Assembly (NCBI RefSeq): GCF_902459465.1 | Contig: NC_047077.1 | Location: forward strand, 8,928,001 to 8,992,000 | Direction: 5' to 3' | Length of the DNA: 64,000 bases | Source of the DNA: Asterias rubens | Lineage: Eukaryota | Part shown: positions 1 to 61,800 of the stretch, piece after piece | Position numbering within the stretch: the stretch's first letter is position 1 | Layout of the letters: each line of letters opens with the position of its first letter | Notes under the pieces: model-generated | Database searches by the model: none | What the model saw: the letters and a program-made list of their open reading frames with translations, nothing else | What the model was told of the DNA's origin: nothing | Translations under genes and position numbers: made by a program

Positions 1-549
1 AAATAAGTCACAAAAATACTTTTCAACTCATACGACAAATATTATTTCAGCATGTAAAACGTATTTTCGGCACATTTTGTTTTACTCATTTCTCAAAAAC
101 TACAACATCCCAGGAACCAATATTTTAAGGTAAGATTTCTACTGTCTGTAGACAATATGTTTTGTGTTACAAAAAGTACAAACGATCTTTTAAGCTAACA
201 TTTTCCCCCCTTAATATTGGTTGTTTTAACGTCACACGCTTCATTGAGATAACTGTTGTCATTGTTTGTTCTGAAATCATTATATATTTATTTATTTATT
301 TGTTTATTTGTTTAATTCGTTTTTTTTTTCAGATTTTAGTAAACTTTTACGAATTAAATATTTTGATATGTTAATTTAAATATTAATTTACTAGTTTTAT
401 TTTTCAAATGGCGGTAAGTCCACTGTCGGTTTGCACAATAAATATAAATTAATTAATATAAATAAATATAAACTAGAGTATTCATGGTGATGGTTGTTAT
501 GTATTACCAAACATATGTTTATGCAAGAAACGTATATTTTTGTTTGCAG

Positions 550-840
550 ACTGATATTGAAACTGAGGTACTATTTCGAGAAATAGCGGAACAACTGGGA
601 GAGGATTGGGAACGTTTAGCCACATATTTAGGCCACCGCAGTAGCCACTTGTACGCAGTGAAATGTGACAATGCAGGTAATGTTCGTAACCAGATATTCT
701 GCATGCTAGTCAGGTGGCAGCAAGGATTTGGACCATTTGGAGAGGCGGCTTTCAACACTTTATCATCTAGTCTGGAGAGTATCACAAGGAATGACCTGGT
801 TGAGTTTTTAAAGCGAAGTGTTTCAAGATATCGAAGATGA
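550..840 (+). CDS. Terminal coding exon encoding a death domain; upstream exons lie outside the window
   Basis: Acceptor ttgcag ends at 549. The exon reads TDIETEVLFREIAEQLGEDWERLATYLG...QIFCMLVRWQQ...TLSSSLESITRNDLVEFL-stop, which fits the death-domain pattern (IA..LG.DW..LA..LG; ML..W; L...L..I.R.DL). Confidence 0.85.
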   Translation, partial: TDIETEVLFREIAEQLGEDWERLATYLGHRSSHLYAVKCDNAGNVRNQIFCMLVRWQQGFGPFGEAAFNTLSSSLESITRNDLVEFLKRSVSRYRR

Positions 841-8299: not shown

Positions 8300-11200
8300 A
8301 TGGCTTCGGCTTCGAAGAAAGAGAGTGTCAACCGCAATCTACGGTCCGTGTTGATCACGGAAAAGGCAGGAGTTGCACTGAATCGCTTGCAAGGTAATGT
8401 TTATGATGATGATGATTTACGTGAAGTTGTTTGCGTTTTAACCACCAGCACCACCAAAGCACCATGCATGCCTTCACACACACATGTGCAGCCTAGCGCA
8501 GCGGCCCATGGCTGCCTAGCCTGAGCTGATGAGTGGTGTAAAGTGGCATTGCGTTGTTGTCGTGGTGGCACGTCCATTTTCTACTACTTTCTTAACATTA
8601 CTCACTGATTACGTACTTAATTACGGTTTGATGGGAGGGTGATAGGCTATAAATTAGCCCCATTATTATTCCATTAATAAATAGTTGTGTCATTGTCAAA
8701 ATAATAAATGGGCCAAAAATAAATACGCCGGACTCCCTATTAAAACTGCCTTACTTACTTAACTTACAAAAAGCGGAGGGAGTCCAGCGTATTCGGCACT
8801 TCCTTGGTGCATGGATGGAGGTAGATTTCTCCTCCGTGGTTGGTAGGAAGAATATGGTAACTCAGGGCAATATCCACATAGTCCTCAGCCACCTTTTCAT
8901 TCGTTAGGAAATAATTGGATATCTAATTTACTTTCATTCTTTTCAAGTTTCATTAGAATTAGATTTAGATATTCCTTTTTTTCCTTTTTTTTTTCTTCAA
9001 ATTTGTCATGTTTATGGTGGCAGGGCCCCTGTTTAGTTTATTTATGCCCGGGCCGGGGCTAGCTAAAAATGTACCTGTAGACTTCGAACCAAGTTAACTG
9101 CAGACCGAGTGGACTTCAGACCAAGTTGACTTCAGACCTACATAAGGGCATCAATGTGTGGTGAAGAGGTTTTTAACTAGTGGTTTAAACCCGCCAAGGC
9201 CTGGTTCTTGATAATTTTACCAAGGCGAAGTCAAGGTAAATTATTAAGAACCAGGCCTCGGTGGGTTTAAAAATTACTAGTTGAAAATCGATTCAACACA
9301 CCTTGATTCCCTTAATCAATATTTAAAAAAAGTAGGTCTGAAGTCAACTTGGTCTGAGGGGGTCAGCTCTGAAGTCCACCTGGTCTGATTCATAAATTTA
9401 TGACCGAAAACGTATTTATACCTTTTCGTTAAAAAAAACATCAACACTTGTTGTCTAAAATTAAAAGAAAATGCAATAATTATAATTGTTCAATGATTTC
9501 TTTCAACACAACACTCCTCCAGCTATGAAATGGTAAGGCCCTCAACAGCCCTCGGGTAAACAACTCCTTAAAAGGGAATGATGTGGGCATCGCACGTATC
9601 GCGTGATGTGGCACAACTGTCCCGGCCGTTGCTCTCGACCAAAAGGAATGAAGAAACTAGCTTATAAGCACAGGTGCAAGCTTGCATGTCACGCCCATGT
9701 TTCAACACTTTTTACTGGTGTTATATTCTCCATTATAGGCCTAACACCCCCATGTGATGCCCTCTCGACCAATCAGAATGGATAAACTGTCGTAGGTTTT
9801 TATGAATGAAGTTTTTAAAAGAAGTAACTTATTGCACTACCATGAAGGCTGCATTAATGTAACAAATACAAGTTTTATTGTTTTACTTTTTGTACAGGAG
9901 AGTATCAAGCATTACTGGGTGAGACCATACCTTTTAAAGAGTTTGGGTTCCCTTCGCTTGAGGCTTATCTGAAGTCCATCCCGGCTGTAGTTTCCATCAG
10001 ACGGTAAGATGAACAAGAGTTTTTTATAATAGTTGTTGAATTTGCATCAGGGATAAAGAATGTTAATTTGGTTTTACCTTATACACCGAAGTAAATTTTA
10101 ATGGCAGTGGACACTATTGGTAATTACTCAAAACAGTTATAAGCATAAACCTCACTTGGTAATGAGTAATGTGTAGAGAGGTTGATAGTGTAAAACATTC
10201 TGAGAAACGGCTCCAGCTCTGAAGTGATGTACATGTAGTATTAGAGAAAGAATTAGAGTTTGAGACCTCAGCGTTAGAACTTGAGGTCCTCAGCGTTAGA
10301 ACTTGAGGTCTCAAAATCAAACATCTGAAAGCACACAACTTGGTGTGATAAGGGTGTCTTTCATAAACATGTAGTTATTTTGCAACTCCGACGACCAATC
10401 AAGCTCAATTTTTCACAGGTTTGTTATTTTTATGTTGAGATACACCAAGTGAGAAGACTGGTCTTTGACAATTACCAATAGTGTCCAGTGTCTTTAATGT
10501 AAATCTGTGGAAGTTTTGTGTTTTGTGTTGACGAAAAGTACCAAACCATTTCAAGGCACTGGACTCAAAAATAATTGATAGCATAAAACTTAAATGGTAA
10601 CGAGCAATGGAGAGCTGATAATAGTAAATTGTTAGAAAACCCTGAAGTAACATAGTTTTTGAGAAAGAGGTTATTTCTCACTCAAATAATAAAAGACTTC
10701 AGCTGAAGCCTTTTATTATGCCCACGAAAGTACTAAAAGAATGCAAGGGTGTTTCATTATTCTTTCATTATTCTCTTGCAATTTTGATGTCTAATGTAGC
10801 CCAAATTTTCCCTGGTTTATTATTTTAAACATATTTTTGGGATACACCAAGTGGGAATACTGGTCTGTGACAATTATCGAAGGTGTCCAGTGCCTTTACA
10901 CATGTAAGTGGTGCCATGGAATGAGCCATTTGCAAGTTAAATTTGAATAATGTCTGGTACAATGACTTGCTTATTGACAATGCACCCTTTACATTTGCAT
11001 TCCTCAGACTATCGGGACAGTTGCTTCGCCTTGTGATTAGGGGTTTGCTTTTGTATTGCAACCTCCAGGATGAGCAAACCCTGGTACCATTGTGTCATAC
11101 ACATCCATTCAGAATTGTGTATGGGTGTTCACCGTATCTTACACAACTACGCAAAAGCTTGCCCCTAATCACGTGGTGTAGCAACTGTCTCGATAGTCTG

Positions 11201-14200
11201 AGAAGAATTCAAATGAAAGCGGTGCATCGCTACTAAGCAAGTCATTGTACCAGACATTATTCAAATCTACGTAACTTGCACGTGGCTTATTGGGTCCAGC
11301 TGTTGTAGATAATTCTTCACAAAATAATTCTAATTTTTTTCTCGTGCAGGGGTCCAACTGGGGAGATGATGTGTGCGGCGGTTGCTGACGAGACGACCAA
11401 GCATATCGCTAGCCTCGTCAGCAGACAGAAAGGCAAGAAGTCCAGAGGGGTAAGATTTGGAGAAACAAAAATCATGCAAATCTTCATACACACAAGTCCC
11501 AAAATTGGTATGGGCTACATTCAACTATTTTTCCAGGGGGTCGTTACCACCAATTCCTTGGGCTGAAGCAGGGCTACTCTATACGATATGATGTCGGTGC
11601 AGGCTTTGGTATAATCCATATAAAGCCTGGCTGTTAGAGCATATATGGTACAGGTATATGGTACTTGATTACATGTATCACCAGAGGGCATTCTCACTCC
11701 ATAATTACTTTCGACTTTAGGATGTACCAACAATGCACCACAAGTCCGTTGGTTTCAAGTTGGTAAAACACTGCTCCAGAATTGCAAAGGTGGTGGGTTC
11801 CATTCTCACCCAAGTTATTTAATAGAAAGCTCTGGAAAGTACCGATTATACAGTGCTAACACACCGTATTATATAAGCAAAAAAAAAAGGTGTATAAAAT
11901 TATGGTTATTGTTTGATTTTTGTGCCAGTCTTAATAATGTGATGATAATTACTTTTTTGTTTTATTTCTCAAATTTAGCGAGGGATAAGGTCCAAACCTG
12001 GAAGGTCCTATGCTCATCCAACGTACGCCATGTCCAAGGCTCGGCCCGCTGGCAAGCTCTACACCAGTCGCTTTGTGCCTAAAACAGGGAGGTCAGGGAG
12101 GTACAACACGTCATTCAAACCGGCAGCAGCACAGCAACCAAAGCCAGTCCGATATAATCACACGTCCAAACCAGCGTACACTCATCAAACACAGACGGTC
12201 AAATACAACCCGATCAGACCGAAAGAGACAACAGCACCTAAACCCCTAATGTACACCCAACAGGCTCGACCAACCGCATCCCAACAGTCTAGACCGACAG
12301 CATTCCAACAGTCTAGACCAACCGCATCCCAACACTCTAGACCAACCGCATCCCAACAGTCTAGACCCACAGCAGGGCAACAGTCTAGACCGACAGGATC
12401 CCAACAGTCTAGACCCACAGCAGCGCAACAGTCTAGACCAGCAGGATACCAACATTCTAGATCGACAGAACCCCAACAGTTCAGACCAACGGCAGCCCAA
12501 GAGTCCAGACCGACAGCAGCTCAAAAACCCACAGCCGCCGAAGGAGATACCAAGCCACTTGTACCAACAGCAACTACTCAGCTACCCAACCCTGGTCCCT
12601 GGTCTGGTAAACTTGGCTCCAAGAAAAGTCAACAACCTGCCAAAACAACGACAGTAGGCACAACTCAGTCATCGACTTGGAAGCCAGCCGATGACTGGAG
12701 TGCTACAAACGGTCTCTCCTCCTCCTCTAAACCAATCCATGAGAACATTCATGTGACCATCCCCAATGATGGGGCTCGCCAAGTGAACAGTCAAGCATCC
12801 AAACCCGTTCACAATAACATTCATGTCACCGTCTCCAACAATGGTTATCGTCAAACTGAGGTGTCACCCCAGAAGCCAAATGGGAGACCAGGAAAACCCA
12901 GTAAACCGGAGTGGTCGTCTAACTTTGAGGTACCGCCTCGCTTCAAGAGATTAGTGTCCCCAACAGGTACTATAAATGAAGGTAAGCTGGTAGTTTTGAA
13001 CTTCTGAATTTGTGAAAAATGTTTGAGAAACGTCTCATGCATGAAACTTTTCTCAGATTGAAATATTTTTAAATCCCTCCCTCAAAAAACACATTCCTTA
13101 GAAAGAGAGTGTTTCTCAAAGTGGTTTCATTATCAAGAGGGTCAGTATTTCTTACCAAGTAAGTTTTTATGCTAAATAGTTCAATAGTCAAAGGTAGGCT
13201 TTACCTCCTCTTAAATGATATTTGAAATATTTTTTTTAAATCTTTGATTCATGCAGGTTTCCATAATACCCGGGAGTCTTCATTGAACTCTGACCCATCA
13301 CCAAATTATGACCCAACACCAAACTTTGACCAATCACCACCCAGCATTGCACAGCAACCGTCGTCAACGTCAACAAATAATGTTCTCTCTGAAACAGCCA
13401 ATGAAACATACAGCTGGATTCAAACTGTAAGAGTAAACAAATAACCAAAAACATTTAAAAGCAGTGGACACTATTGGTAATTGTCAAAGACTTAGCCTTT
13501 ACAGTTGGTGTATCTCAACATATGCATAAAATAACAAACCTGTGAAAATTTGAGCTCAATCGGTCTTCGAACTTGCGAGATAATAATGAAAGAAAAAATA
13601 CCCTTGTCACACGAATTTGTGTGCATTTTCTTATTTAAGGTCTCGAAAATCAAATTCTTGGAAAATTGGTTCTTTCTTAAAAACTAAGGCACTTCAGGGG
13701 GAGCCATTTCTCATAATGTTTTATACCACCAACCTCTCCCCATTACTCGTCAACAATAAAGGTTTTACGCTATTAACTACTTTGAGTAATTACCAATAGT
13801 GTCCACTGCCTTTAACCCAAAAGTGTTTGTATTGGAAAATGGTATGAACAGGGCATTTTAAAGAAAAGCACCTGTCCTTGAAGTATGTATGTAAACTACC
13901 CCTACACACAGACGTGTGACGGCTAGGAAAAAGTAGTGAACGCTTTGAGAGGCCTTCGGTATGATTAAGTGCTATCTGCTGTGTGTTTGTTTTGATTTTT
14001 TTTTATTTGTTTATGCAAGTCGCTGGACACACAAGTCGCTAGACACACAAGTCGCTAGACACACAAGGCCTGACTAATTTTCCAGGGTCCATTGCCACCT
14101 ACTCGTTGGGCTGAAACAAGGGTTACCCCTTTTACAGTCCTACAGGGATGTAGGCTTGGGTATCTAGGGCCACTGATTTTCCGCGATCGCGGAAAACGGA

Positions 14201-17200
14201 CGGAATTCGCGGAATCCGCCCTTTGAAACGGAAAACGGGATTTCAGAAAATTTGATTTTTTATTTATTTTTTTTTTCTTGACGCCAAAACTATTGAAATT
14301 GCATTCTTTATTAAGATTCTTTTTGTTAAACTAAAAAGGCATCAGAAATCAGACCATTAAAAAGTACGAGATCGTAACCGTGGATCATTCTGTTCTACTT
14401 CACACCATCCTCAATGTTTACACACATGATGTACACACGTTGTTAACATGGTTAAGCGAAGGGCATTATTCGCGGCTCGTTTTAAACATTTTTTGTTCAC
14501 CCAAATTGCATTTTCTCCCTCTCTTTTACCAACAATCATACACAAACTAGCTTACCTATGATCTATAAGAACACATACAATGTTTTTTCATCTCGGAAAG
14601 GTCTAAAATAAAACCGTAAACTGTCAACATTCTGTCGCCAAAGCGAAAACAAAATGGCTGACATTTTGTTTGTGGATGGAGAATGGTCACGTCCATAGAC
14701 TTGTTTCCAAGTCTTTGATCATGCTGAAACAGCGCCCTCTTGTGGATACGCTCCTGTCATTAGCCTACAATGTGGCTGATGCAGAGAATCAACTGCAGTT
14801 TTAGACTTGGAATCAAGTCTATCACATCATGTGCATTGATACTGCAGTCACAGTGCAACCTTTTTAGAACAGCAGTATACAAAATAATCCACAATTATAA
14901 AAAAAAGTATTTTTTTGAAATTTGTCAGTTCAAATGAACATTTTACGAAGTCAACAGTGCAACTTATCTCAAATTGATTTTTATAAGTGTGTCCCTGGGT
15001 ATTAAACAACCTTTTATCTAATTAAAAAAACATGAAACAGAATTTTTTGTGCCTGAAACGGAATTCATGTTTTTGCCAAACGGAATTTGCACTTTTCTGA
15101 AACGGAAAATCAGTGGCCCTAGGTATCGTCAATCTCAAGCCTGGCTAGTAGAGAAGAAAGCACTTCTGATAAGTGATTTCCTTTTTTGTATTTTCAAATA
15201 ATCCATAATCTATTTATATTTCTTATCTAGCTATGTGACTATTGTGTATGTTATTATGACTAGGTACTTGGTGAAAAGCCAAATGGTTTGTGGGCAAGTG
15301 CTCTGTGTGACAGGCATCTGAAAGAGTTTGGTCAGCCTCTGGATACTGACATCATCGAGCAAATGAATAAGCTCAGTCTGCTTGAGAAAGAAAGGTATGC
15401 AAATTATTTGTTAAAGTTGTTTGGCTTTTCTTGTTTCATGTGAGTATGTATCAATCTCTCAATCCGCTCTGTACTATGGCAATTTTTCATGTATTTGGTA
15501 CTATATGTGTGTCTAACTGAGACAACAATCATTTTTGTGACTCATCTAATATCCATGTTAATTTAATTGTTAAATGCTATGTTATGCATTTGTTGTGTGA
15601 GTCAACCAACCCCAGTGCAAAGGCGGTTTAGTCAGCACCATATTGGTCTTGACACTACAGCCAACGTGTATTATTTCTAAAACCCCCGTTTTTTCAACTA
15701 ATCCATATTTTGTTGATATTTGTTTGTGTCTTTACCAGCATCGCCAACAGTGACATCCTGTATCCTAAACTAACTGGAGCCCCAACTGTCACGCCAGTTA
15801 CACATGGCAGGTCAGGACAGAAAAACAATGCAGAGCACGGGAACCAGACTGGAAACGGAACCCCACAAAGGTCAGTCATTTGAAAGAGTCATGAATAATG
15901 CACGTTTACAAATGAATATGCACGATGCAAAATATTCCTGTAAGCAAATTCAAATTATGCATAATCAAATAATGTGTATCATCATTGGCTCATTTTCGTA
16001 ATGCAAACAGCAAAATGTTTAATGCATTTAAACACAGTCATACTGCATCTGCAAACGATTTCAAGTATTATGCAAATAATTAATGAATAATGCATGAAAA
16101 TCTCGCCTTTATTTCTTGTATTCATGAATTGTGTGAGCTTTGCATTTGTCTGGCATTTGGTGGGGTACATTTTTAGTTTCAATGAACAAACTAAGATTCT
16201 GCCCTTTGTTTAAAGCTTTGTTGTTAAATATCTTGATTTTTCAAAGAGCATCACAAACACGTTCAAGATTCACACTGTCAAGTATTGTGTGTTTGTTTAG
16301 AACTGGAAATGGGTTCTCAAGATCTAGGCATTGTGTTTCATTTTGTGTGCTGTAGTAGTTTGTTTAGATCAGTGCCGTGTCTGTAATTATATATCCTAAC
16401 CCAGTTGTCTCCATGGAAACACATCAACCAAGCCCTTTGATCACACTAAGCCAGTCCATTCAGGAAACCTCTTTGGAGCAAACCTTGACATTGCGCTCAT
16501 TCTAAGGAATGTGTGTAAGAGACAAAACTTGCCAGTAGAGTTCTACGTAGACTCCACGAAGCAACCTGGAAAGTCTGCAGTGTGCGTGATCTGCACTGCA
16601 GGCACAGATGTTGCCACAGCACATGGGCTAACCATAGGTACCGCTAAGCAAGCTGCAGCGGGTGAAATCCTTCAGCAGTGGAACGTGGCTCCTAGCGACC
16701 TAGGCAATACCCCGCAGGTCTCTCCAGATGAGTGCGTCCAAAGTACCACAGACCATGATTATGAAACCCAGCTTCAAAATGAAAAAATCATGAAGAGGTT
16801 GAGAAGGTTTGGTCCAGCAGACGATCTAAAAGGTAGTGAGAATCTGTTCCTAAGAGAGGAGCATGTTAAAGGCTTCTGCAGTTGCTTTGGCGGGCGTGGC
16901 ACTTGTCCATTTCAGATCCCAGTCTCTCCTGAAGATTGCATGGAAAGAGCCAAAGCCTACGACGAGAAAGCCCAAGAACAAAATGAAAAACTGTTGAGGA
17001 GGCTGAAGAGGTTTGGTCCAATAGAAGATATTTCAGATGAGGAGAAGCTGTACTTGAGAGTTGAGCATGTTGGAGGCTTCTGCAGCTGCTTCAGCAGTGG
17101 GCACAAATGCCCATTTCAGATCCAGATCTCTCAGGTGGATGGCATCAACAGAAGCAAAGAGACTGTCCAGGATGAGAAAGCCCGACTACAAAATGAAAAA

Positions 17201-20200
17201 CTGATGATGAGGTTGAAGAGGTTTGGTCCAACAGGAGATCTGCAAAATCATCCACGTGGCATTTTTTCCTCGACCAGAAGTGAAGACAAATTTTGTGTGT
17301 TGAATTCCGGAAAGCCGGACCATCGTAGAGCAACTCCTGCTGTTGAAGGGAAGAGTGACTTTGACATACATGTAGAAGAAGAAACCATTAATCATATAAG
17401 TTGTTCAGATGAAGTAAATCAACGTGGTCTGTCAGAACCAACGTCAAGTGCCACATTTCCACTCGCCAAAACATACAAATCATTTGAGAATCCATTGGCA
17501 CCAGAATCTCGGAGAGCAACAGATCAGGAGGTTCGGCAGGCTCTCAAAGTAACATTTGGTAAAACCGCCATCTACGAGACTGTCAAGCACATGGGAACTA
17601 AAGAAGACCCACTCGTTAGTGTGTGCTTCATGGCAGGGGCGTTCGTCGGAATCGGGAGGGGCGGCACAAAGACTGAAGCGAGGAAGGCAGCTCTTGAAGA
17701 TCTGCTCAAGAAGCAGGGAGAGTTCTTACGAGTAAAGAGTGAACTCCAGGAACAGGCGGCGAAGGGAAAGAATGCCATCCTTCAAGAGTCTCTGATGGAT
17801 TTGAGTCTTGATTCTGACGAGGAGAAGCTAGAGGTAAAATCGGAGCCAGCAGCCACTGTTTTTGATGAAGTACTTGTACAGGATGAACAAGTAGTGAGTG
17901 TGAAGGTTGAAGCTGGATCAGTAACTGGACTACAGACACAAGCTTATCTCCCACCAGCACTTCCCCAGAATGGACAGTTGTCACCACCACCCAATATGGT
18001 GGACTCTGCTGAAATGAAACCCGTAATTGGTCCAACCAGGCAGCCTTCGCATGGGCGTGGTTACACAAGATGGCAAGTTGATCCTCAGTACAGGTCAAAC
18101 AGGTTAGCCATCCGCACTTATACCAGCATTTCTGTTTTTAATTTCACTTGTTAAACGCTAACCACCCCCAAACCAATCAAAATCCAACAGCATGTTTTGT
18201 TGGACTGAGGACTGCACTAGGAAACTGTTCGTTTTGAACATGTCAGGCATACACATGTACTTTGTTACCATAACCAGATAAAGCTGGTTGAGTTACATGT
18301 TGCATTGAATTTTGTTGGAGTGAGGAAGGCTCTTGGTAACATTTCAAGGAGTTTTGGTGTTAAGCTGGAAAGGCTCGTTCATACTCCTTGCTCTATAACA
18401 AGGTAAACACTGCTGCGAACCTAATATCTGCAACAGCAGAACTTAACTAACCTCAATTTGAATTTATAAGAATAATGATTTGAGAGCTGTTTTAGATGAG
18501 CACCTCTGGAAGAAGTTAGGGCTTTTCACTTTGGTGTAAGACAGAAAATAATAGGCTTTCAAGCTCTCTGTGTTGCTCCCAGCTTGAACTTGCCTGTCCC
18601 CTTCATCCCTTCATTGTTTGCATGCTTTTGTTAACACCTTTTTCCATTTTTTTCTGGCAAAGTTAACTTACCATGCAGTTGTGTTTCCATGCATGCTTGT
18701 CATCATTTAGGTTTTTATGTGTGATTTGTCATTGGTTCATTTTGGCACAGGCTCTGTGACTACACTTGAGCGGAAAAATGTACCAGGCTGGCCAAATGTG
18801 TTTTATATTCGGTTTATGTTTATGTTTGTTTTAGCAAGATGAAATAACAATCATTAGAAATCACTCACTGTTGTATATCATGTAATCATGTTATTTTTTT
18901 CACAGGAAAACTAACATTATTGTAAAGACAGGATTGACATTTTTACAAATGCCTGCTCACATCGCGGACTCGAGGGAGACATCAACTTGATGATTTATAC
19001 GGAGACTTGAACTTGACCTCTGTGAGCAGAGCAGAATTTCATTGTTGCTCTGCTTACTGCAAAATGTATGCTTATGGTTTCCTTTTAAGCACATAATTAT
19101 GTAGGCAGTAACTGTTTAAAGACACTGGACACTATTGGTAATTTTCAAAGACCAGTCTTTTCACTTGGTGTATCTCAACATATGCATAAAATATCAAAAC
19201 TGTACAAATTTGAGCTCAATTGGTCGTTGAAGTTGCGAGATAATAATGAAAGAAAAAAACACCCTTGTCACACGAAGTTGTATCCTTTCAGATGCCTGAT
19301 TTCGAGACCTCAATTTCTAAATCTGAGGTCTCAAAATCAAATTCGTGGACAATTACTTCTTTCTCTAAAACTACAGTACTTCAGAGTACTCACAATGTTT
19401 TATACTGTCAAGTCAACCTATCCCCATTCGCTACCAAAAAAGTTATTATGCTAATAACTATTTTGAGTAATTACCAATAGTGTCCACTGCCTTTAAGCAC
19501 AGAAATCTTTGGTAAGCAGAGCCATAAATTACACTGTACATGTAGACCTGAAAAATGCATGAATTTCATATTTGTTTCTGACTGTGTAAAGTTAATTAAC
19601 CCTCCTTATTTCTGACCATTTAATACCATCCACTGTGGTTTTAAATAATAATAATAAATAATGTTGAACATTTCTAGTGCGTCATGTCTGTCAATGATGA
19701 CACTCCTGGTGCAAAAAAACAAGAACTCTGCTAATACACAATGACACAAGACAACCAAAAGTTTGAAGGCTATTGTTTCCAAAACATATGTTTTCAGATG
19801 AGTTTTGAATGATACGTATATGACAGCCTGCATTCTGATCATTTAGTTAATGTACACAGTACAGGCCTGATGACATGAATGGACGCCTGAAGGCTTTTGT
19901 TGCCCTCGTCTGGGCCAGGGCCCAATTTCATAGAGCTGCTTAAGCACAAAATTTTGCTTAAGCAAAACATCCTTGCTTAGTAAAATCAGATTACCGGCCA
20001 AGACTCCACTCAATTGTTATGCTAAGTAAACAACAGCTAAATACCAGTCACAAGCAATGTATATGGCATAAAGTTTGGGCCAGTAACGTGTAAAATAAGC
20101 GAGCTATTTTCGTGCTTAAGCAAATTTTTTGCTTAAGCAGCTCTATGAAATTGGGCCCTGGTCTTGGCCTTGGTGCACTTTCCATTGAGGTCCCCTCTGC

Positions 20201-23200
20201 AAAATAAAGATGGCCTTGCCCTTGCTTCGACAGGTGAGTCGAGTCCCCTTTTCAGATCTGGGTCTCTCAGGAAGATTGCATTGACAGAACCAAAGCAATA
20301 GTCTACGTTGAAAAAGTACAAGAACAAAATTCCTTGCCCTCTCAAAGATGAAATGTCCAGACCTGAAGTATACATGTGTACCAACAGTTAGTTATGTGCT
20401 CAGCAGTGACACCCATACACAACCTGTGCAGCTTCAGTGGTTTTGAATGGTCAGTTAACTGGAAACATTAGCAAGAGTAGGAGAGTTTTTAAATAACACG
20501 AGCATGTATTTAACTCATTTTTTAATTATCCATGTTTGACTTTGACCTAATCGGCACAAGTTCTGTCATTTTTGTACAGCATCAATTCTTTACAAAGTTC
20601 ATAATAATGTTTAGTACCAACAGGCAAATAACACTCCACACTAGAACCTAAAGTTGAGGCTAAGTACCCGGATCTCCTACAAACATGTCTTGTGCACGTA
20701 TGTGTACCAGTTTTTGGATTACTCCTGTACGGTACTTGCAGGTGCAGTTTGCCAATTGATGCGGTGATCATGTAAAGTGGTGGAATGTTTGTTGAACATT
20801 AAGCTGATTATTCTAATGCCAACTTTCTTTCCCAACTTAATAATCAGTTCACCCAGATTGCCTGAAGAGGATACGCCCAGTGAGGGGTACAGCTCGCCCA
20901 CTTTAGGGGTACCTAGTTCCCTCAGTGAGCCTAGCAGTAGACCGCCCTCCACAGTGGCACCCGGTAGCAGACCATCCTCAGCGGATTCACCCAGTACACT
21001 CGGGGAACCGTGCGAGGAAGGGTACAGTTCACCTACTTCAGAAACGCTTGGTTCATCCAGCGAGCCCAGCTATGAGGGGAGTTACTCGACCATTGATGCA
21101 CCCGGTGTGCCCAGTCTGGTGCTACCCGAGGAGAAGGAATGGGATCTGTATGTAGCGTATATCAAGAGTTTGTCGGACTTCTACGCCATTCTTATTGGAG
21201 ATGACTATTCGGTAAGAATTCATGCATTTATCAAACTGTTGACCCCACCCCCCCCCCTTACACCATTGTAGTGACATCATCATCAGTGCTAAAATTTTAC
21301 ACTGGCCCACGGGCCTGAGGCCAGTATATCAGGCCAGTAAACTAATGACTGGGGTAAGTAATATTGTGATCAAAATGTTGATTTGGGTCTGATAAAATAC
21401 CTTCATTTCTATTTAGTAATGAAGTATTTTAACACCCGTACAGCCGTAAAGATAAATGAGATCAATCTTCTCTTTACATGTCTAAAGCTTGGTTCATACT
21501 TCCTGCGAATGCGAATGCGACACGAATGTTGACGTCACAAATTCGCAAAGAATAATTCGCAGCAGTTCAACTTTGCTCAACTCACTTGGAATATCGCTGC
21601 GAAAGGAGGGTGTGACGTCAAATTCGCTTCGCATTCGCATTCGCAAGAAGTGTACGAACCGGGCTTTAGGCCGTATCGGAATTTGTGGATACAGCTTTTT
21701 CTACGGCTGTTGCTGACGGGGTAGCTAAAAGGATGTCCTATACCTCAACGCATGATTACGCGGAAATCTAACTGTAGCCGTAGCTGTAGCTGCTAATTCA
21801 AACACGACCTTAAGTTAGTTACATGTGTTTTGTGCCTTTCAAAATTTAATGAAGTTTACATTGTTGCAACTGGTGCCCCACTCCTTATTTTGCTTAGCAA
21901 TTTGCTAAGCAGTATTCTGTTTTTGCCATTTTGTGTTGATTAAATTTATTTCTCTGGTACAACAGGAGCAAATGATAATCATGGAGGAAGCGATGCGATC
22001 ATTCTACCAGTGCAGTACGTGGGTACTGACTGAGCCACCAGAGGTAGGAGTGTGCTACGCTGCAGAGTTCAACAGGGAATGGCTCCGGGTACAAGTTACG
22101 TCAGTAGAGGATGAGCAGGTAACGTCTTAAGTGCTTGGTCCAATTGATTGCAGATCCAATTTATTGCAGATACTGGTGGTCAATGTCACTGTTTGTTTTG
22201 CAGTGAAGTGGGCATTTAGGCGACGCAGCATTTACACATAAACCTATTGCCCAACAACATGGTGAGCAAGAAAATTCAAAATGTATCATGCTTATTTGTG
22301 TTCCAAACCAACTCTTGATTAGTGTGCCAGCGAGCTACATGTAGCCCAATATTTCTGTCATTTTTTTAAACGTTTATTCTTGTTTTCTATTGTTGTTATG
22401 CTTTTACTATTAGGTGTTCATATTTTTTGTGTACACAAACAAGGAAGACAAATTTCATGCTTGTTTTCATGACAATGATTATTTTGAATCCTGATTCTTG
22501 AAGTTCCCTCTTATTTAGGAAAACAAATGCAAATGCAGACTTCAAGCTTTTGTGTGTAAATGTATACTCTTGACATAAAGGTTATTATATAATTATTGAC
22601 CAAACTAACAGCTGTCGAGCCGCCAATTACAGGAAAGGATAATACACAATTAAAAATATTCATATAGCCTAGTACATAGTTAAAAATAAAAATAGAAACA
22701 TCTTTGGAAAAAAATTGAAGCAAACATTACAAAGTTAAATAAGTTACAGATGGGAAAAGAAACAAATGTTCGACTGTAGTGTACAAATATATATTATAAA
22801 TTTATGTTATAAGCATATAGGCCTACATTAATTATAATAAAAAAACAATATGAAAAAAAAATATATATATATATGTGAGATACTAAGACTAAAGGTAACA
22901 ATAACAATGCCAAGATAAAAATAACAATATCACGACTACATTCTAATTCTTTGATATTTTGTATTGCTTACAGGTGAAGTGCTTTTTACTTGACCATGGG
23001 GACACTGAGAGTGCAACAATAACCTCCCTCAGACCGCTGGCAGAAAAGTTTCTGCAGCTTCCGTTCCAGGTAAATTCAACCAACGATTCATTGGGTCCTG
23101 CTCAGGGCGCAATTTCATAAAGCTGTTTTGTGAATGTCTTTGCTGAGCAAGAAATGAGTAGGGCACCAGTCGCAGTAATGGTGACTGTATTGTATGCTGG

Positions 23201-24823
23201 CTGTATTGTATGCTGGCTGGTAACCTAATTTTGCTTAGCAAGGGTCTCCCGTGCTTAAAGGCTTTTGGGATAGATATAGTGCTAGAATGTAAAAAAAACT
23301 GAACTGTCAGACTATAGGCGCAAAGCGTGAAAACGGAGTGTAAAGCCTGCTTACATACATTTATCTTTTGTTTTAAAACCCCTACTCTAATCTGGGGCGT
23401 TCTATGTATATGGTTTTTACTTCTCGTTTTAATAAAATTTATCTCAATTATAAATTTTGTTAACAAATTTTTTTTGAGGGGTGGTAAAAAAATGTACTTC
23501 TGGGTAAAACCTGAGAAAACACATCCATGTATACAATAGCCTGAACATCTGACGTCACACTGAGGCTCTTGAATAACGCCAGAGACTGGTCTCCAGCCAG
23601 CGTGTACATGCACCTTTGACCTACATTCATTTCACATAGAGATACGCAGTCAAATTCTATGGGGGACGTGATAGGAGTGTACACTGTTTGGGAATGTATG
23701 GAAAGCTCATGTCACTGGATGTGCATGTTTATCCAATGGTATCATTGTATCCAATGGAATCACTGGATCTGAGTTGCAGGTACCTGTGGATAAAGACAGG
23801 GGCCCAGTCTATGTATACAACAGTTATTGATAAAATGGTTGTTTTGTCTCTTCAGGTTATTCATTGTAAGTTATCGCAGTGTGAGCAAGTGGCTCATGAT
23901 GATAAGACGGCCCTCCAGATGTTTTGCCAACTTGCTCTGGGGAAAAGTCTCCTAGCTGAAGTTGTCTCAAGGTGAGTGGGTTTGGGGTCAAAGGTGAAAT
24001 ATTGCACTGGTGTTCAGTTTTGAAAAATTAATCTGTTTTATGCATGAAGCTTATTTTCTTCTGAAGACGAGCAGAGTATACTGTTTGCAAAGTCGAGACC
24101 ACACCCAACACTTCTCCCAAAAGAGATTTTACACTTACATGTTGTTGTACCCACATGGTTGCTTTTATTTATAGTTCATTCTAACCTTATGAAGCTCTTG
24201 TTGCTAATATTCCATTGTCCTTGCTGTAATTTTCTTTTTATTTTATTGAAAATTTACTTGCAATTTGACTGATGCCTCGAATTTTAAATTTTTGAATGAA
24301 CCATGTATGAATAAATTAATAAAAGTAGGAATTATTTATATTGTTACGAGTGGGGGAAAAATATGAAAAATGATGAGAAAATAGTCTGAAAATGTTTAGT
24401 TAAAGCATACACCATGTGTAGGTCAGCCTTTGTACTCGGTTTTATACTTACACTTTTTTTCAGGAATAATTTTCATGCCTTCTTATTGAATGTATTATAA
24501 TATATTATAGTCACAACTTTTTTTTTTTATATGGCTTATGCCCCTGTATAGATTTTGCAAGTTTTTATTAACATCTTTAAACTTTCAGACTGGTTACCAA
24601 TTTTGGTCTTGCAGTATATAATGTGATGTACATGTTTTTACCCCAAAGTTCCCCACAATATTGAAAACCTTGCAAGACTTATACACACTCTATTTCCGTC
24701 CGTCGTTTTTTATTTGTCGGTTTTCTGTTTTGTTTTAACAGAGATGGTGACCGGATAGAGATGGAGCTTTTTGATAGCTCAGATGTATCCATCCTGGAGC
24801 AGTGTTCAACTGCTGGAATATAA
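8300..24823 (+). CDS. tdrd7: TDRD7-like LOTUS/dsRBD/Tudor protein, 13 exons, about 1411 aa
   Basis: Phase-consistent exons: 8300-8393, 9898-10003, 11350-11449, 11979-12981, 13257-13426, 15264-15394, 15739-15870, 16405-18102 (alternative donor 18093), 20857-21211, 21966-22118, 22974-23069, 23856-23971, 24742-24823; total 4236 nt. The N-terminus GVALNRLQGEYQALLGETIPFKEFGFPSLEAYLKSIPAVV closely resembles TDRD7 LOTUS1 as recalled (GVALPRLQGEY...IPFKQLGFPTLEAYLRSVPAVV). LOTUS2 is VLGEKPNGLWASAL...ILYP. The extended Tudor includes WLRVQV, CFLLDHGDTE and FLQLPFQVIHCKL. Orthology versus paralogy is not established. Confidence 0.85.
10098..10497 (-). mobile_element. MITE family 1, reverse orientation (TDRD7-like intron 2)
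   Basis: Begins ...gcagtggacactattggtaattactcaaa and ends tttgacaattaccaatagtgtccagtgtctttaa. Confidence 0.85.
10549..10898 (-). mobile_element. MITE family 1, divergent subfamily, reverse orientation
   Basis: caaggcactggac ... gacaattatcgaaggtgtccagtgccttta; the body resembles 2799-3174. Confidence 0.7.
11979..12981 (+). CDS. TDRD7-like exon 4: low-complexity region with 11 octapeptide repeats (QQSRPTAx)
   Basis: Acceptor aatttag at 11978, donor g|gtaagc at 12981. In frame with the provided ORF 12030-13007. Confidence 0.8.
13455..13815 (+). mobile_element. MITE family 1, 28 nt downstream of the TDRD7-like exon 5 donor
   Basis: Both TIRs and TTAA are present. Confidence 0.85.
14165..15121. 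mobile_element. Non-autonomous TIR element (957 bp) with a 6-bp target duplication, inserted into a SINE
   Basis: TIR tagggccactgattttccg / cggaaaatcagtggcccta. Direct repeat ggtatc at 14159-14164 and 15122-15127. Subterminal aacggaa repeats; no transposase ORF. Confidence 0.85.
16405..18102 (+). CDS. TDRD7-like exon 8 (1.7 kb): dsRBD-like, ~69-aa His/Cys repeats, second dsRBD-like
   Basis: Acceptor cctaacccag at 16404 keeps phase 2 and opens into ORF 16511-18154. dsRBD-like 1 spans about 16487-16681 (LRNVCKRQNLPVEFY...AHGLTIGTAKQAAAGEIL). dsRBD-like 2 spans about 17525-17713 (IYETV...VGIGRGGTKTEARKAALEDLL). Confidence 0.8.
19116..19496 (+). mobile_element. MITE family 1, full copy
   Basis: Both TIRs and TTAA are present. 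Confidence 0.85.
19915..20161. mobile_element. Palindromic MITE (cagggcccaatttcat family)
   Basis: Long inverted arms cagggcccaatttcatagagctgcttaagca. Relatives occur at 38807-39002, about 23103-23260, about 37838-38015 and about 40440-40490. Confidence 0.8.
20211..20330 (+). pseudogene. Degenerate intronic copy of the exon-8 His/Cys repeat unit
   Basis: Translates as CPCFDR*VESPFQIWVSQEDCIDRTKAIVYVEKVQEQN, colinear with CSCFGGRGTCPFQIPVSPEDCMERAKAY-DEKAQEQN, and contains an in-frame TGA. Confidence 0.7.
21483..21813. mobile_element. Two abutting small TIR elements (21483-21668 and 21666-21813), possibly Harbinger-like
   Basis: First: taaagcttggttcatacttcctgcgaatgcgaatgcg and its inverse. 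Second: ttaggccgtatcggaatt / aattcaaacacgaccttaa. Both are flanked by TAA/TTA. Confidence 0.65.
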
Positions 24824-55874: not shown

Positions 55875-58800
55875 TTAAATGCGGGTATCTTTTTGATTCG
55901 TCTCCACATTTCTCTCATCCCGTAAATTGGGGTTGACATAACTATTACTGGCTTTTACGTCAGTTTTAAGGGTCGACCTGGCACCAGCAGCAGATCTCGA
56001 GGCTGTAACTGATGCGGAGGTTCTGCCACTCGACCTCGATGCCGACAGCAGCGGTTGCTTTCGCCACAGCGCCCTCACGCGTTGGTTCAAGCAAAATGCG
56101 ATGAAGATAAAGACCCCCTGCAGCGTATTGATGATGACGTTGATGTAAGAGAAAACCACGTGGTTAACAGCTTCGGAAACGAATGCGAAAATCCACGTGA
56201 CCCCGAACAACAGAATGAGCTGCATGGGGTAAAACAAAGTTTAACATAGTTATGACAGATGGTTTTGGCAGGATTTGAATTTGACTATGTGCCCTTGTCT
56301 TTAGCCGCTTTCCGGAACCTGTGATTTCATTGGTACAATGACCATTGGATATTAACTTGCACATGTGTATTATACAGGGTGCGTCGACCCCGGGGTGCTC
56401 ATCCAAGTGGCGTATTTTATTTTTTTCCAGGACGAACGACTTGGGCACTGATAAAATTACCCCACGTTCGTACTGGAAAAGTCGCCTATTTTTTGTTTGG
56501 CAGGACGATTGTGTGCAGATATTTACCCACGTTCCACCTGAGAAAAAATACGCATCACGACGTGACCCTTCTCGTCGTGACGTCAGAGCACCTCGGGCCA
56601 GCCCCAAGTGGATAGGGTCACTTGGGATGGCCCGAGGTGCTCTGACGTCACCACGAGAAGGGTCACGTCATAATGCGTTTTTTTTTTCCAGGTGGAACGT
56701 GGGTAAATATCTGCAGACGTTCGTCTTTGTAAAAATAGGGGACTTTTCCAGGACGAACGAGGTAATTATCAGTGCCCACGTTCGTACTGGAAAAAAAAAT
56801 TAAATAAATAAAAAACCCGCCACTTGGATGAGCACACCGGGGTCGACTCAGGGAAGCTAATCGAACACACCTACAGTTTGGAATAATGGGTCTGCAACTG
56901 TTTGCTACTGTGCAAACTCTTATCGAAGACCGAAATGTAGGTCTATAGTCAAGGCGCTATGATGTACATTTTTACAGAAAGAATATTAATTTAATGAAGT
57001 TATGAATTCTTCGACCCGGGTAGCACCATGTAAGGGTTTACAAAAGGTGCTACCCCGATCAGCAGCCACAGCCCGGAACACCGGTGCGAACCCCTTCTAA
57101 ATCTCTCTTCGAAAAGTGCACCTGCCGTTGATTTCACAAAACTCTTCTTAACTTGAGACTAATCTTATAGGACTTAGGACGAGTCCCAACACTGCACTGT
57201 AGCATGGATTAATCCTAAGTTAGGACGAGTTACTCGTCCTAAAGACGAGTCCTAACTCTTTGTTAAATCGACCCCTGGTTCTTTACAGGGCCAACGGCTT
57301 AATACGTCCCATATGCATCCGAAGGACGAAGCAATGGTTACGTGTCTTGCTGAAGACACGAACACACACTCTGCTGATCAGAAACAACAGAGTTTGATTT
57401 CGGTGCTCTTAATAACGCTCGGCCACGGCATTTCCACAATAGGCTGGATATCCCGTGCACATGGTTCGGTTCAGTTCAGTTCAGTACAACATTTATTTCC
57501 AATTCCTCAATCAATATAAATACAATGTTTACAAAGTGATACTCAATAATGAGAATGAAAGTTAAAACAAGTTTATGGTTATGGTTATTATGTCTGGGGT
57601 TGATTTCAAAAAGGTAGTCCTAATTAATAGGACTAGTCCTAGGCAATGCTAAGAGATAGGACTGGTCCTAAGTTAAGACCAGTAACTCATCCTAACTTAG
57701 GACTGGTCCTATATCTTAGCATTGCCTATACTAGTCCTAAGTTAGGACTACCTTTGTGAAATCCACCCCTGGGTCTTTAGATTTAAGATTGTACAAAAAA
57801 AAGCTTAAAAAAAACGTTTATAAATGTTGAAAACAATAGCGAGGTTTAGCTGCATTACGTGAACTTGAACGTCACAAAATCAATATTGACATGTTGTTTC
57901 TGGGTGAGGTCGCCACTTATGGTTGTTTTTTTCGTGCCCGCGTATGACGTTTGGCGCATGTACGTCGTACCTGACGTATTTTTGTTTACTTCAAGTGTGC
58001 TAGAAACGTGAGATTGTTAACAATGCACTTATAATAAAGGTTCTCGGTCAAATTCAGCAAATGAGCAGTCAATTTCATTTCCGTGCGTTCGAATTAAAGC
58101 TGTTTTGCCTCTCCAGTTGTTATTGCGTTTCAAATTCATAATTTGGTCATTCAATTTCGTTTTGAATCAAGTCATGTTCCTTTAGCACTCTGTTCAATTT
58201 AGCGTATCGTCATTCTTTTTCGTGACACACACGCCTCAAGAAGCGTCTGCGAATTTGAATGCTGCTCTGATGAATTGTTAAATAGAATGATTATTTTGTT
58301 AAATCGAATGCCGCAACATTACATTTGACTTATCATAAAACGAAATACCCTTTTCAGTAGCATTCGATTTCGCGCGAAAAAGAATAGCTTGGTGGTTAAA
58401 TTGGCTTGGCTGCTCATTTGCCGAAACTAGCCGAGAAAACCTATATAAAAAATAATTTGTTCATACCTTTACGTAAATCTTCACTTCCTCCAAGATATCA
58501 GTCATCTTTCCTTTGGTTTGTACCATCTTGCTTTCCATTTTGGTTTTCCTCACAGCAACCAAAATAGACACGAAGAAACCTGTACTAAGGAGCAAAGACA
58601 ATGCCACAGGAATACCGAAGACAACCATCAGAGTAGTGAAACCTTCAATCCAACATGGCGGCGAGTCTTTGTATATAGCGGGTAGGTCTGTGCACTTGCA
58701 AAGTGTAAGAAACAGGCAGGTGCATACTATCAGTAACGAAACACCCCAGACGATTGTCATGGACATTGCTAGTTGTCGGTATTTTCGACAGTCTGACCCA

Positions 58801-61800
58801 CCCCGAGCTCGCATGTGCTTTCCGCTAAAGGTTTTGGCAGCATTGTAGGACAACGCCGTCATCCAGAAGAATGCAGCTAGCCATGAGAAGTGTAACAAAG
58901 GGGCGGTAACCAGACAGTTGTAGCCAAAGATTGCTGCATTTGATGCAAAAAACAGTAGACAGTTTGCCGTAAACAGCGCCACCACAAGGTTCATCGTGTA
59001 CAGGCCAGCCAGGCTTCTCAAAGACGGGAACAGGCAGTATGTGGCAAAAGTGGCAACAAGTGCAACAATGGACAGGCAGTTGCAGACTTGGGCGATTATA
59101 TTCATCACAAATGCATTCATATCTCTAGAACTGATTGGTCCACAAACTGCAGCCGTGCCGTCCCTCATTAAGACAAACTTCTCATTTCTCAGTACCTGAC
59201 CCGTAGCCAAAACCTCCATGGTTGCCGCCTGGTTTTCCGAAACATACTCCTCCGGAATCAGAATGGTAAACTCTGAACAGCTTAGCATCAGAATATCAAG
59301 GCATTCCTGTGGAACTAATAAAGTTCGTGTGAAGCTTGAGTTTTCTCTTGCCCAGATAGACGCCTTGAAAATGTCTGATGTGTCAAGTTGAGTTTGTTCA
59401 AACGCACCACCGGCTAGAAGGGTATCGTTTTTACAAGTATCAATCTTCGACAACAGCCTTGCTCCAAATGAAACATACACCAAGACAGTCGAGACATTAC
59501 ACAGTGAGTATAGAGACCAGAATAATGCATCGTCAGCCTTTTCGGTTAGGTCGGTAATTATAGATAGAGTAAATTCACCGAAAGGTGGATTGGTTTCATT
59601 GCTAGGGTTGAACTGCCAGACTGCTACATCTCTACCGAGAGAAGTGTTCAGGAAAATACTGCAGTTGTTAGACACTCCTGCCGGAACCCCAGCATCCGAG
59701 TGGCCTTTGACTTCCAGCAGGCCTGGATTTCCCCCGCAGCCCCCTTCCTCGTCTATCTGACCGGAGGAACAGAACACAGCACGACATCTCTCCAAGAACG
59801 GATCGTAAAGCTCCCCTGGCTGACACACCGAACCGTCATCGCCACCCCAGCCAAAATCAAACAGAGTTTCTATGTTAAATGGATCTTGCGTGACACCACA
59901 TACAGCGCCGCAATCGCCCCAACTGTCCGAGGTACATAGTGGAGTGCAGAGCAGCCCACACGTTTCATCCGGCCCAATATTATCAAACCCATTACACATT
60001 GCACAGTGAGGGTTGCGGTAATTAGTTTTATTCCTGACTAGCGGTGCAAAGTAGTCCCTGCAGGCTCGTTCCAGTGAGGTACCCGAATATTCCTCCAGAC
60101 ACGAGTTGACAGTTTTAACAGGGCATGTGCGGGCGACTCCAAGGGTATCGTTCGAAGGTTCAAAAACGTATCTACCGGTTGGTTCTCCGGAGAAGTGATA
60201 TTCTAAATTCGCGCTCCACTTCTTCAAACTCGCAGGTTGGACCCCATGGCAAATAGCGCAGAAGACGTTCTTGTAAACGGCTCCGTTGTCGACGTAGACT
60301 GGTAGGGATCCTATGACGTCACCATCGTCTGCTTCGTTTTGACAACTTTCTGCAACGAAGGAGTTCGTCCAGGAGTCCGGACAGATGCTCACCAAGGCAA
60401 ACCCGAAATATTCGTAGCCTTGTTGTGCACCTTTCCCTGGTGTCCACACACAAGAGTAATGGTGGATTCCAATACCATTTATTTCTATCTCTTGTACTTC
60501 GGGAGCGGGGTTACAATTTGAATGGTAATCGTAGCAGCAGTCGTTGAAATAACCACAGGAATCATCACATTTGCAGTATTGCATGCCTTCGATTGGTCGA
60601 AGTGTATCATGTGGACCCTGATTGCAGTCGTAACCACAGTAGTGAATTTCACCGCACAGATACCCGGGTATATCAAATCGCTCCGTTTCTGAAAAGTACA
60701 ATTTTGAAAAAATCACTGGTTTCACTCATGTTATTTCTCAATGGGATATATCTTTAAAGACAGAGGACACTATTGGTAATTGGTAACCTTGTGTCACGAA
60801 GTTGTGTGCTTTCTGATGCTTGATTTCGAGACCTGAGTTCTAAACTTGAGGTCTCGAAATCAATTTCGTGGAAAATTACTTCTTTCTAGAAAACTACATC
60901 ACTTCAGAGGGAGCTGTTTCTCACAATGTTTTATACCATCAACCTCTCCCCATTACTCGTAATCAAGTAAGGTTTTATGGTGATAATTATTTTGAGCAAT
61001 TACCAATAGTGTCCACTGCCTTTAAACAGTAAGGTTTGCGGTAACACCATGTGTATGATAATCTCAAATTGAGTTGGGTGTTTTTTTAAAGAAACGTACT
61101 CTCTAAACGTAAAAGATTGAAAAACACCACTCTTTATATTCCGAGCTGTCCTCCATAATGGCTCTTCAAAAAAAATGGTGGTTATTTTACTATTTTAGAG
61201 GTGTTTCACTCCAGGACAGAGTGAAAAATCACTCAAAAAGATGCAAAATTCACTCTATAACAGTGCTTTTTCACTCTTTTGCATTAAGAGAGTATAGGTT
61301 TCAACTCAACGTTTCGAATAATGCTCTGATCGTCCTCTGGAGAAAAAAATTAATGACAATTCTTCACATAAAATTGCAGAATGGCAGGCCTGGGATATCA
61401 CCTAACGTCATAAGGTCAGGGCTATACATAAATGACCTGTCGACCTATGTCATTATGGGGAACTTTGCCACCTATACTTCTGGGGCTAAAACGTACCTGC
61501 CATGCATTCGAGGTACGCATACCATTCATTGCATTGAGTGTCATCTTCGAACACAAGTTCACACTGGGAAAGTGATGTCTCGTCGCCAAGACAACCCACT
61601 GCTGACACAAAAGCCGAATCGGTAACCAGATCGACAGGTCCCTCATACCAACGGTTCACAAAAAGGCTGGTCAGATATCCAAGATGGCGGCAGACGACTT
61701 GTGTGTCTCGGTTATCCCAAAGTTTTCCACAAAATGCGCCCCACTCTTCTTCCGGTCCGTGACGGCCCTGTACGAAACCAGACCCTTCATATTTAGAGTC

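Follow-up and report, generated by a model that had tools for sequence, protein, structure and literature searches.

The repeat array and its host gene

To what family, if any, does a tandem repeat of about 69 amino acids (aa) belong that is encoded between two double-stranded RNA-binding domains (dsRBDs) of a starfish protein? The question is raised by 64,000 nt of Asterias rubens DNA (assembly GCF_902459465.1, contig NC_047077.1, positions 8,928,001 to 8,992,000 of the forward strand), the whole of which is called the window here and supplies the numbering unless another contig is named. A sequence-only reading had placed an unrecognised repeat with one histidine and three cysteines at 16712-17242 (+); translation gives exactly the same peptide, and its QNEK unit starts at aa 89, 157 and 227 of the open reading frame correspond to window positions 16775, 16979 and 17189, or to aa 703, 771 and 841 of the protein. 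The term "unrecognised" holds for one half of the unit. The basic amphipathic half corresponds to a described motif, the DDX39B-interacting motif (DIM) of SARNP, Tho1 and MOS11, as judged by a consensus match and sub-threshold profile matches, while the half with the histidine and cysteines (the H/C element) matches no family. With moderate confidence, and from sequence comparison, we read the repeat as a putative multivalent docking array for the helicase DDX39B/UAP56 combined with a new Cys/His element, in a LOTUS-dsRBD-Tudor scaffold.

The host gene is A. rubens LOC117300681, annotated as an "uncharacterized protein" of 1414 aa (P0003 in the homolog search). The protein is 100% identical to the translation of window 16403-18100, and likewise to most of its other exon matches over 8300-24820. 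Pfam finds a LOTUS domain (PF12872, OST-HTH) at aa 9-73 with 45.7 bits and a Tudor domain (PF00567) at aa 1238-1356 with 76.4 bits, so that the product is a LOTUS-Tudor (TDRD5/7-like) protein, as had been proposed. The repeat is real and lies inside one large coding exon with AG/GT boundaries and a split Ser codon at each end; the bulk of this exon is the 547-aa open frame at 16511-18154 (+), which contains the repeat. The features of the exon that frame the array are as follows.

16405..18102, plus strand: large coding exon (aa 579-1145), carrying dsRBD 1, the repeat array and the dsRBD-like domain 2
16487..16681, plus strand: dsRBD 1 (Pfam PF00035, dsrm, 24.8 bits against a cutoff of 23; aa 612-670)
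16775..17239, plus strand: tandem repeat array, 2.2-2.6 units of 204-210 nt (68-70 aa)
17522..17713, plus strand: dsRBD-like domain 2 (near aa 952-1015), the best-conserved block of the exon

The position between two dsRBDs is thus confirmed on one side: the first domain passes the Pfam cutoff, whereas the second, with 14 bits in Asterias and 14.5-19.2 bits in the orthologs, stays under the same cutoff of 23 and can be called dsRBD-like only. Tandem Repeats Finder describes 16775-17239 as 2.2 copies of a 204-nt period with 75% matches (score 489). Units 1 and 2 comprise 68 and 70 aa and are 51% identical in protein; unit 3 ends after ~26 aa.

When the whole exon was searched with HMMER against 1.84 billion representative proteins, only two proteins matched: XP_038051619.1 of Patiria miniata (P0001) and XP_022091108.1 of Acanthaster planci (P0002). 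Both species belong to Valvatida, and A. rubens to Forcipulatida. The two orthologs share the domain architecture of LOC117300681 and align with the window exon by exon; their dsRBD-like domain 2 is 70-90% identical between them. A word-indexed homolog search with the exon gave no match, and searches with the Patiria ortholog returned only the three starfish proteins and unrelated Tudor proteins. The names of the three starfish loci are not mentioned in the literature searched.

DIM-type motifs in the basic half of the unit

The DIM of SARNP and Tho1 has the consensus K1xxxR5xx[R/K]8F9G10, in which R5 and F9 do not vary among 37 DIMs (Xie et al. 2023, PMC10508174). In the complex with DDX39B, R5 contacts D283 and Q310, F9 enters a pocket of F287, F312, P313 and I340, and binding is abolished by R5A/F9A or by mutation of D283 (PMC10508174). 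Three such motifs are found in the Asterias array.

16784..16813, plus strand: DIM-1, KIMKRLRRFG (aa 706-715), matching every specified consensus position
16988..17017, plus strand: DIM-2, KLLRRLKRFG (aa 774-783), matching the consensus
17198..17227, plus strand: DIM-3, KLMMRLKRFG (aa 844-853), in the truncated unit, with no H/C element after it

All three have K1, R5, R/K8, F9 and G10, and the strict consensus is expected by chance ~0.002 times per protein. The linker between the dsRBDs of the orthologs also contains DIM-like motifs, at positions that differ from those in Asterias: RLEARAARFG, GRAERFC and NKRAERFG in Patiria, and RAARFC, RVERFC and RAERIG in Acanthaster. Each chain holds several motifs: Asterias has three at a spacing of 68-70 aa, Patiria has three in that linker, and Acanthaster has two plus an altered one. 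R5 and F9 are both kept in 3/3 motifs of Asterias, 3/3 of Patiria and 2/3 of Acanthaster, in whose third motif, RAERIG, F9 is replaced by I. The similar number at differing positions indicates that the motif count is roughly kept while the positions turn over.

The profile comparisons point the same way. PF18592 (Tho1_MOS11_C, gathering cutoff 26.8 bits) is the top Pfam match of unit 2 (E 0.0024, 18.2 bits; 14.6 bits for the whole protein) and, independently, of the Patiria linker (E 1.5e-4, 22.1 bits). It matches three of the nine starfish motif segments and is the only family that matches more than one. In a six-frame scan of the 417-Mb genome with PF18592, the LOC117300681 exon ranks second with 18.8 bits, between two exons of the SARNP gene at 23.3 and 17.1 bits, which are also below the cutoff. 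This evident true SARNP gene lies at C16:6390670-6394945 (-) and its DIM exons encode LRAERFN, KKRSERFG and KRKQRFG. With these three DIMs as the reference, hhalign aligned the nine starfish segments in register with a probability of 83.7% (E 8e-6); in the control, the H/C elements against the same SARNP DIMs, the probability was 0.35%. The segment KLYLRVEHVG was also considered as a degenerate DIM, which would make the unit a hairpin like that of the Tho1 C-terminal domain, and was rejected, as F9 is missing and its hhalign probability against the SARNP DIMs is that of the control.

The AlphaFold2 model of the 178-aa array contains helices at residues 2-16, 58-85 and 134-155, which end at or just before RFG, with a mean predicted local distance difference test score (pLDDT) of only 50.7. 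Taken together, the comparisons suggest that the basic segment is a DIM-type motif and more likely the partner-binding part of the unit than the H/C half.

The presumed partner is encoded in the same genome. The starfish DDX39B/UAP56 gene is located at C20:~9783900-9790600 (+), with the DECD box at 9784186 and the C-terminal RecA domain split over at least four exons. It keeps D-x3-F, Q-x-F-P and R-I-L-V at the spacing of D283/F287, Q310/F312/P313 and I340, and all residues of the DIM pocket appear to be conserved, as far as the residue numbers can be mapped onto the exons. Another DIM-like open reading frame, KEKRTNRAKRFGIKTPP, is present in a further gene at C5:9312098-9312136 (-) (PF18592, E 0.006), and DIM-like motifs may accordingly occur in further starfish proteins.

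The H/C element

The second half of each complete unit carries the histidine and the cysteines.

16844..16906, plus strand: H/C element 1, LFLREEHVKGFCSCFGGRGTC (aa 726-746), no Pfam or PDB match
17048..17110, plus strand: H/C element 2, LYLRVEHVGGFCSCFSSGHKC (aa 794-814), its flanking landmarks being those of the single H/C element of Patiria and Acanthaster

Residues H732/C737/C739/C746 and H800/C805/C807/C814 have the identical spacing H-x4-C-x-C-x6-C, and 12/15 core residues are the same in units 1 and 2. Four residues common to two paralogous units that are 51% identical are insignificant alone, and the orthologs provide the real test. In both Patiria, with the element EELYLRVEHQAGFCDCSAAERHDDCKVPRC, and Acanthaster, the homologous position retains L-Y-L-R-V-E-H-x2-G-x-C-x-C, and H-x4-C-x-C is expected by chance ~0.005-0.01 times per protein. 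Comparison of the four instances, which come from two starfish orders, leaves E, L, L, R, E, H, G, C and C as invariant columns. A further Cys follows C-x-C, 6 residues on in Asterias and 8 in Valvatida; the spacing that had been called invariant is so within Asterias, and in Patiria and Acanthaster x6 becomes x8. Between these two species the identity is 65-70% in the H/C element, 55-75% in the DIMs, 65-90% in the dsRBD-like domains and 15-40% in the spacers. By this comparison the H/C element and the DIMs are conserved islands in the starfish linker.

No Pfam family and no PDB sequence matches the H/C element. Searches of PDB sequences with the repeat and with the H/C and DIM profiles gave nothing meaningful (CD82, G-alpha and a viral structural protein, E 0.4-1.2), Foldseek against the PDB gave nothing below E 2, and feature searches of the ESM Atlas gave no usable match. 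The AlphaFold2 model of the 52-aa element shows a helix, a loop and a helix with the cysteines in the loop, at a low-confidence pLDDT of 62.5. The structural check proposed for one unit has thus yielded models of low confidence, for the array as for the element, and no similar fold. Zinc modules are defined by four conserved ligands at fixed spacing together with a known family or fold; here the fourth ligand shifts by 2 residues and the searches returned neither. The element, being conserved in other starfish, may be a small metal-binding module, and zinc is a plausible ligand partner.

Two other explanations bear on these cysteines. In line with the sequence-only reading, the H/C element could be the functional core of the unit and act as a new zinc knuckle for RNA or protein binding, with the basic helix serving generic RNA binding or nuclear localisation and resembling the DIM by convergence. 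The invariant H, C and C, the cysteine 6-8 residues further on and the conservation of the element as an island suit this explanation, and so do the sub-threshold level of all Tho1_MOS11_C matches and the observation that the basic residues of DIMs add to the RNA binding of Tho1 itself (PMC10508174). It leaves unexplained, however, the near-canonical RAERFG and RAARFG of the orthologs, which occur away from the H/C elements, and the in-register match with the SARNP DIM profile; moreover, a zinc-finger family, a PDB sequence and a fold were each searched for and not matched, and the models are of low confidence. We consider it unlikely. Alternatively, the cysteines may be sites of lipidation (palmitoylation) or redox/disulfide sites that govern association with membranes or granules, and not metal ligands. 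The hydrophobic F-C-S-C-F context would suit such a role, and C-x-C is atypical of a single zinc site, but the conserved His and the downstream Cys better suit a site with four ligands, and we give this explanation only a slight chance.

Origin of the array

Each ortholog has one H/C element, and the tandem amplification is therefore, on comparison of the three proteins, specific to the Asterias lineage. The landmark (R/K)FCV.NS.K places the second H/C element and the third basic motif of Asterias in correspondence with the H/C element and the first RFG motif of the orthologs. This correspondence suggests that the array arose in the Asterias lineage by amplification of an older module in which the H/C element is followed by RFG. 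Two motifs downstream have decayed in Asterias, one reading SEDKFC and the other NQRG in place of NKRAERFG.

17273..17314, plus strand: decayed DIM, TRSEDKFCVLNSGK, aligned with the ortholog segment GRAERFCVVNSK; R5 is lost

Between units 1 and 2, dN/dS is ~0.59 at a dS of 0.62, which indicates moderate constraint on the units. One more copy of the repeat lies in the next intron.

20196..20336, plus strand: degenerate copy of the H/C-element tail, with stop codons (..CPCFDR*VESPFQIWVSQEDCIDRTKA..VEKVQEQN)

Apart from the array itself, this fragment alone matches the repeat in the 417-Mb genome (E 0.0012). It has one TGA and one TAA, and its DNA alignment with both units gives a mean column identity of 76%. 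It adjoins a very high-copy repeat, and many contigs of three sequencing runs skip 20177-20331; the fragment therefore appears to be embedded in, or to lie beside, a copy of a transposable element. The intronic repeats at 19030-19630 and 19830-20230 reach a summed contig depth of 10^4-10^5 in every run aligned and point to an interspersed element of very high abundance in the two starfish species.

The array might be a recent and weakly constrained duplication in a disordered linker, its motif matches being leftovers without present function. Such an origin would agree with the dN/dS between the units, with the truncation of unit 3, the decay of one DIM and the stop-containing copy in the intron, with the absence of the array from Patiria and Acanthaster, and with the little order predicted by AlphaFold2. 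Against it stand the three DIMs, which keep every consensus residue although the intervening spacers have diverged, the H/C core, which is 12/15 identical between the units and kept across orders, and the clear conserved islands between Patiria and Acanthaster. We find this explanation rather improbable.

Proposed function and comparison with known systems

As we picture the favoured docking-array reading, an older starfish module, an H/C element followed by a SARNP-type DIM, would have been present in the linker between the dsRBDs and been amplified in tandem in one lineage, to yield three canonical DIMs spaced by 68-70 residues. Each DIM would form a short helix, the R5, R/K8 and F9 at its C-terminal end would enter the C-terminal RecA domain of a DEAD-box helicase of the DDX39B/UAP56 type, and the linker could dock up to three helicases beside RNA held by the flanking dsRBDs. 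LOTUS domains engage Vasa and Tudor domains engage methylated partners, and the corresponding domains of the starfish protein may do so in addition. The H-x4-C-x-C-x6-8-C segment would be a small metal-stabilised loop, probably with zinc, between two helices, which either fixes the geometry or makes an additional contact. Scaffolds that carry several DIMs are known to bring DDX39B/Sub2/UAP56 into oligomers on RNA and to promote unwinding; how many motifs they have, and at what distance, makes a difference (PMC12809590). SARNP, Tho1 and MOS11 are the proteins that oligomerise and stimulate this mRNA-export helicase.

The likeness to the DIMs of SARNP, Tho1 and MOS11 extends to the 10-residue consensus, the presence of three spaced motifs (2-6 in metazoan SARNP) and the in-register profile, and perhaps to the helix end, which is predicted at low confidence. 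The differences are that the starfish motifs are set in a LOTUS-dsRBD-Tudor scaffold and coupled to an H/C element, which SARNP lacks. In members of the SARNP orthogroup the DIM array comes after a SAP domain at the N-terminus; the Pfam domains of the 1414-aa protein are LOTUS, dsrm and Tudor, with no SAP domain among them. In the literature searched, the DIM is described only for SARNP/Tho1/MOS11 and nuclear messenger ribonucleoproteins. TDRD5/Tejas and TDRD7/Tapas, which are LOTUS-Tudor scaffolds of germ granules, resemble the protein in having a LOTUS domain at the N-terminus, a long low-complexity middle part and an extended Tudor domain at the C-terminus, and TDRD7 of the sea urchin also combines a single eLOTUS with a single Tudor domain; the pair of dsRBD-like domains, the DIM array and the H/C element, in contrast, were not found described for either TDRD5 or TDRD7. 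CCHC zinc knuckles and CXC clusters (Pfam TCR) resemble the H/C element in their shortness, their four potential ligands and the C-x-C pair, but neither has a spacing that fits H-x4-C-x-C-x6-8-C, and the TCR trace is at noise level (E 0.79).

Several observations weigh against the docking-array reading. In the searches, the gene appeared only in starfish. All PF18592 scores of the starfish protein are below the gathering cutoff, and no Tho1 or SARNP chain came up when PDB sequences were searched with the profiles. Position 6 is Leu in the Asterias motifs and usually a small or polar residue in SARNP. LOTUS-Tudor proteins are as a rule cytoplasmic, and DDX39B resides mostly in the nucleus. For the H/C part, the models are of low confidence, no similar element is known, the third Cys lies at a variable distance, and C-x-C is an unusual supplier of two ligands to one zinc.

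A further-reaching version of the model can be formulated, which we regard as speculative and, as a whole, unlikely: one LOTUS-Tudor scaffold would dock two DEAD-box helicases, Vasa through the LOTUS domain and DDX39B/UAP56 through the DIM array, with the H/C metal module gating or orienting the DIMs. Work in Drosophila suggests that UAP56 and Vasa act together to pass piRNA precursors from the nucleus to the nuage, a step for which no bridging protein is known. If the model were true, the starfish protein would be a physical device for handing over from the nuclear-export helicase to the germ-granule helicase. A LOTUS-Tudor protein with a DIM array is a concrete candidate for UAP56-Vasa coupling, at least in starfish. 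The array would be a variant form of the SARNP DIM array in a new setting, joined to a conserved Cys/His element of no family and known so far only from starfish; it suggests that DIMs can be recruited outside SARNP, and it adds a short, conserved Cys/His motif.

Transcript evidence

Transcript support for the exon, which the sequence-only reading had proposed to seek, is indirect: the RefSeq model includes the exon, and a contig of a sister species is apparently spliced at the 3' end of the exon. The library type of runs X1-X3 is unrecorded and introns are covered too. In the sister-species run X2, contigs cover 16672-18011 and none falls in 18230-19029. A 950-nt contig of this run, with a depth of 13.4, aligns to 20845-21212 from its letter 111, and in a contig of equal depth the difference at 18046 lies 54 letters from the end. 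Both placements fit one contig spliced at 18102|20848, whose first 110 letters would be 17993-18102, as inferred from the coverage tables. In the marine metatranscriptome X5, a 258-nt contig covers 17175-17432 with 2 differences. In run X1 the introns are covered as deeply as the exon, which makes it uninformative on exon transcription. In the same run the contig from 20846 onward, which begins at the boundary of the next exon downstream, has a depth of 39, against 7.8 for the contig 16642-18403, which spans the big exon and its donor site; this contrast might reflect an isoform without the big exon or a mixed DNA/RNA library.

Other features of the window

Upstream in the same protein, at aa ~196-285, the exon at 11979-12983 (+) encodes, in a Q/P/T-rich region, ~10 tandem 8-residue units like SRPTA[SG]QQ; the counterpart in Patiria and Acanthaster is also of low complexity, without that repeat. 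Elsewhere in the window, an intron-less 754-aa frame at 58464-60725 (-) combines Somatomedin-B and secretin-family seven-transmembrane domains and is adhesion-G-protein-coupled-receptor-like. SRCR-domain exons are found at 61489-61884 (-) and 62920-63405 (-), and a Death-domain exon at 484-837 (+).

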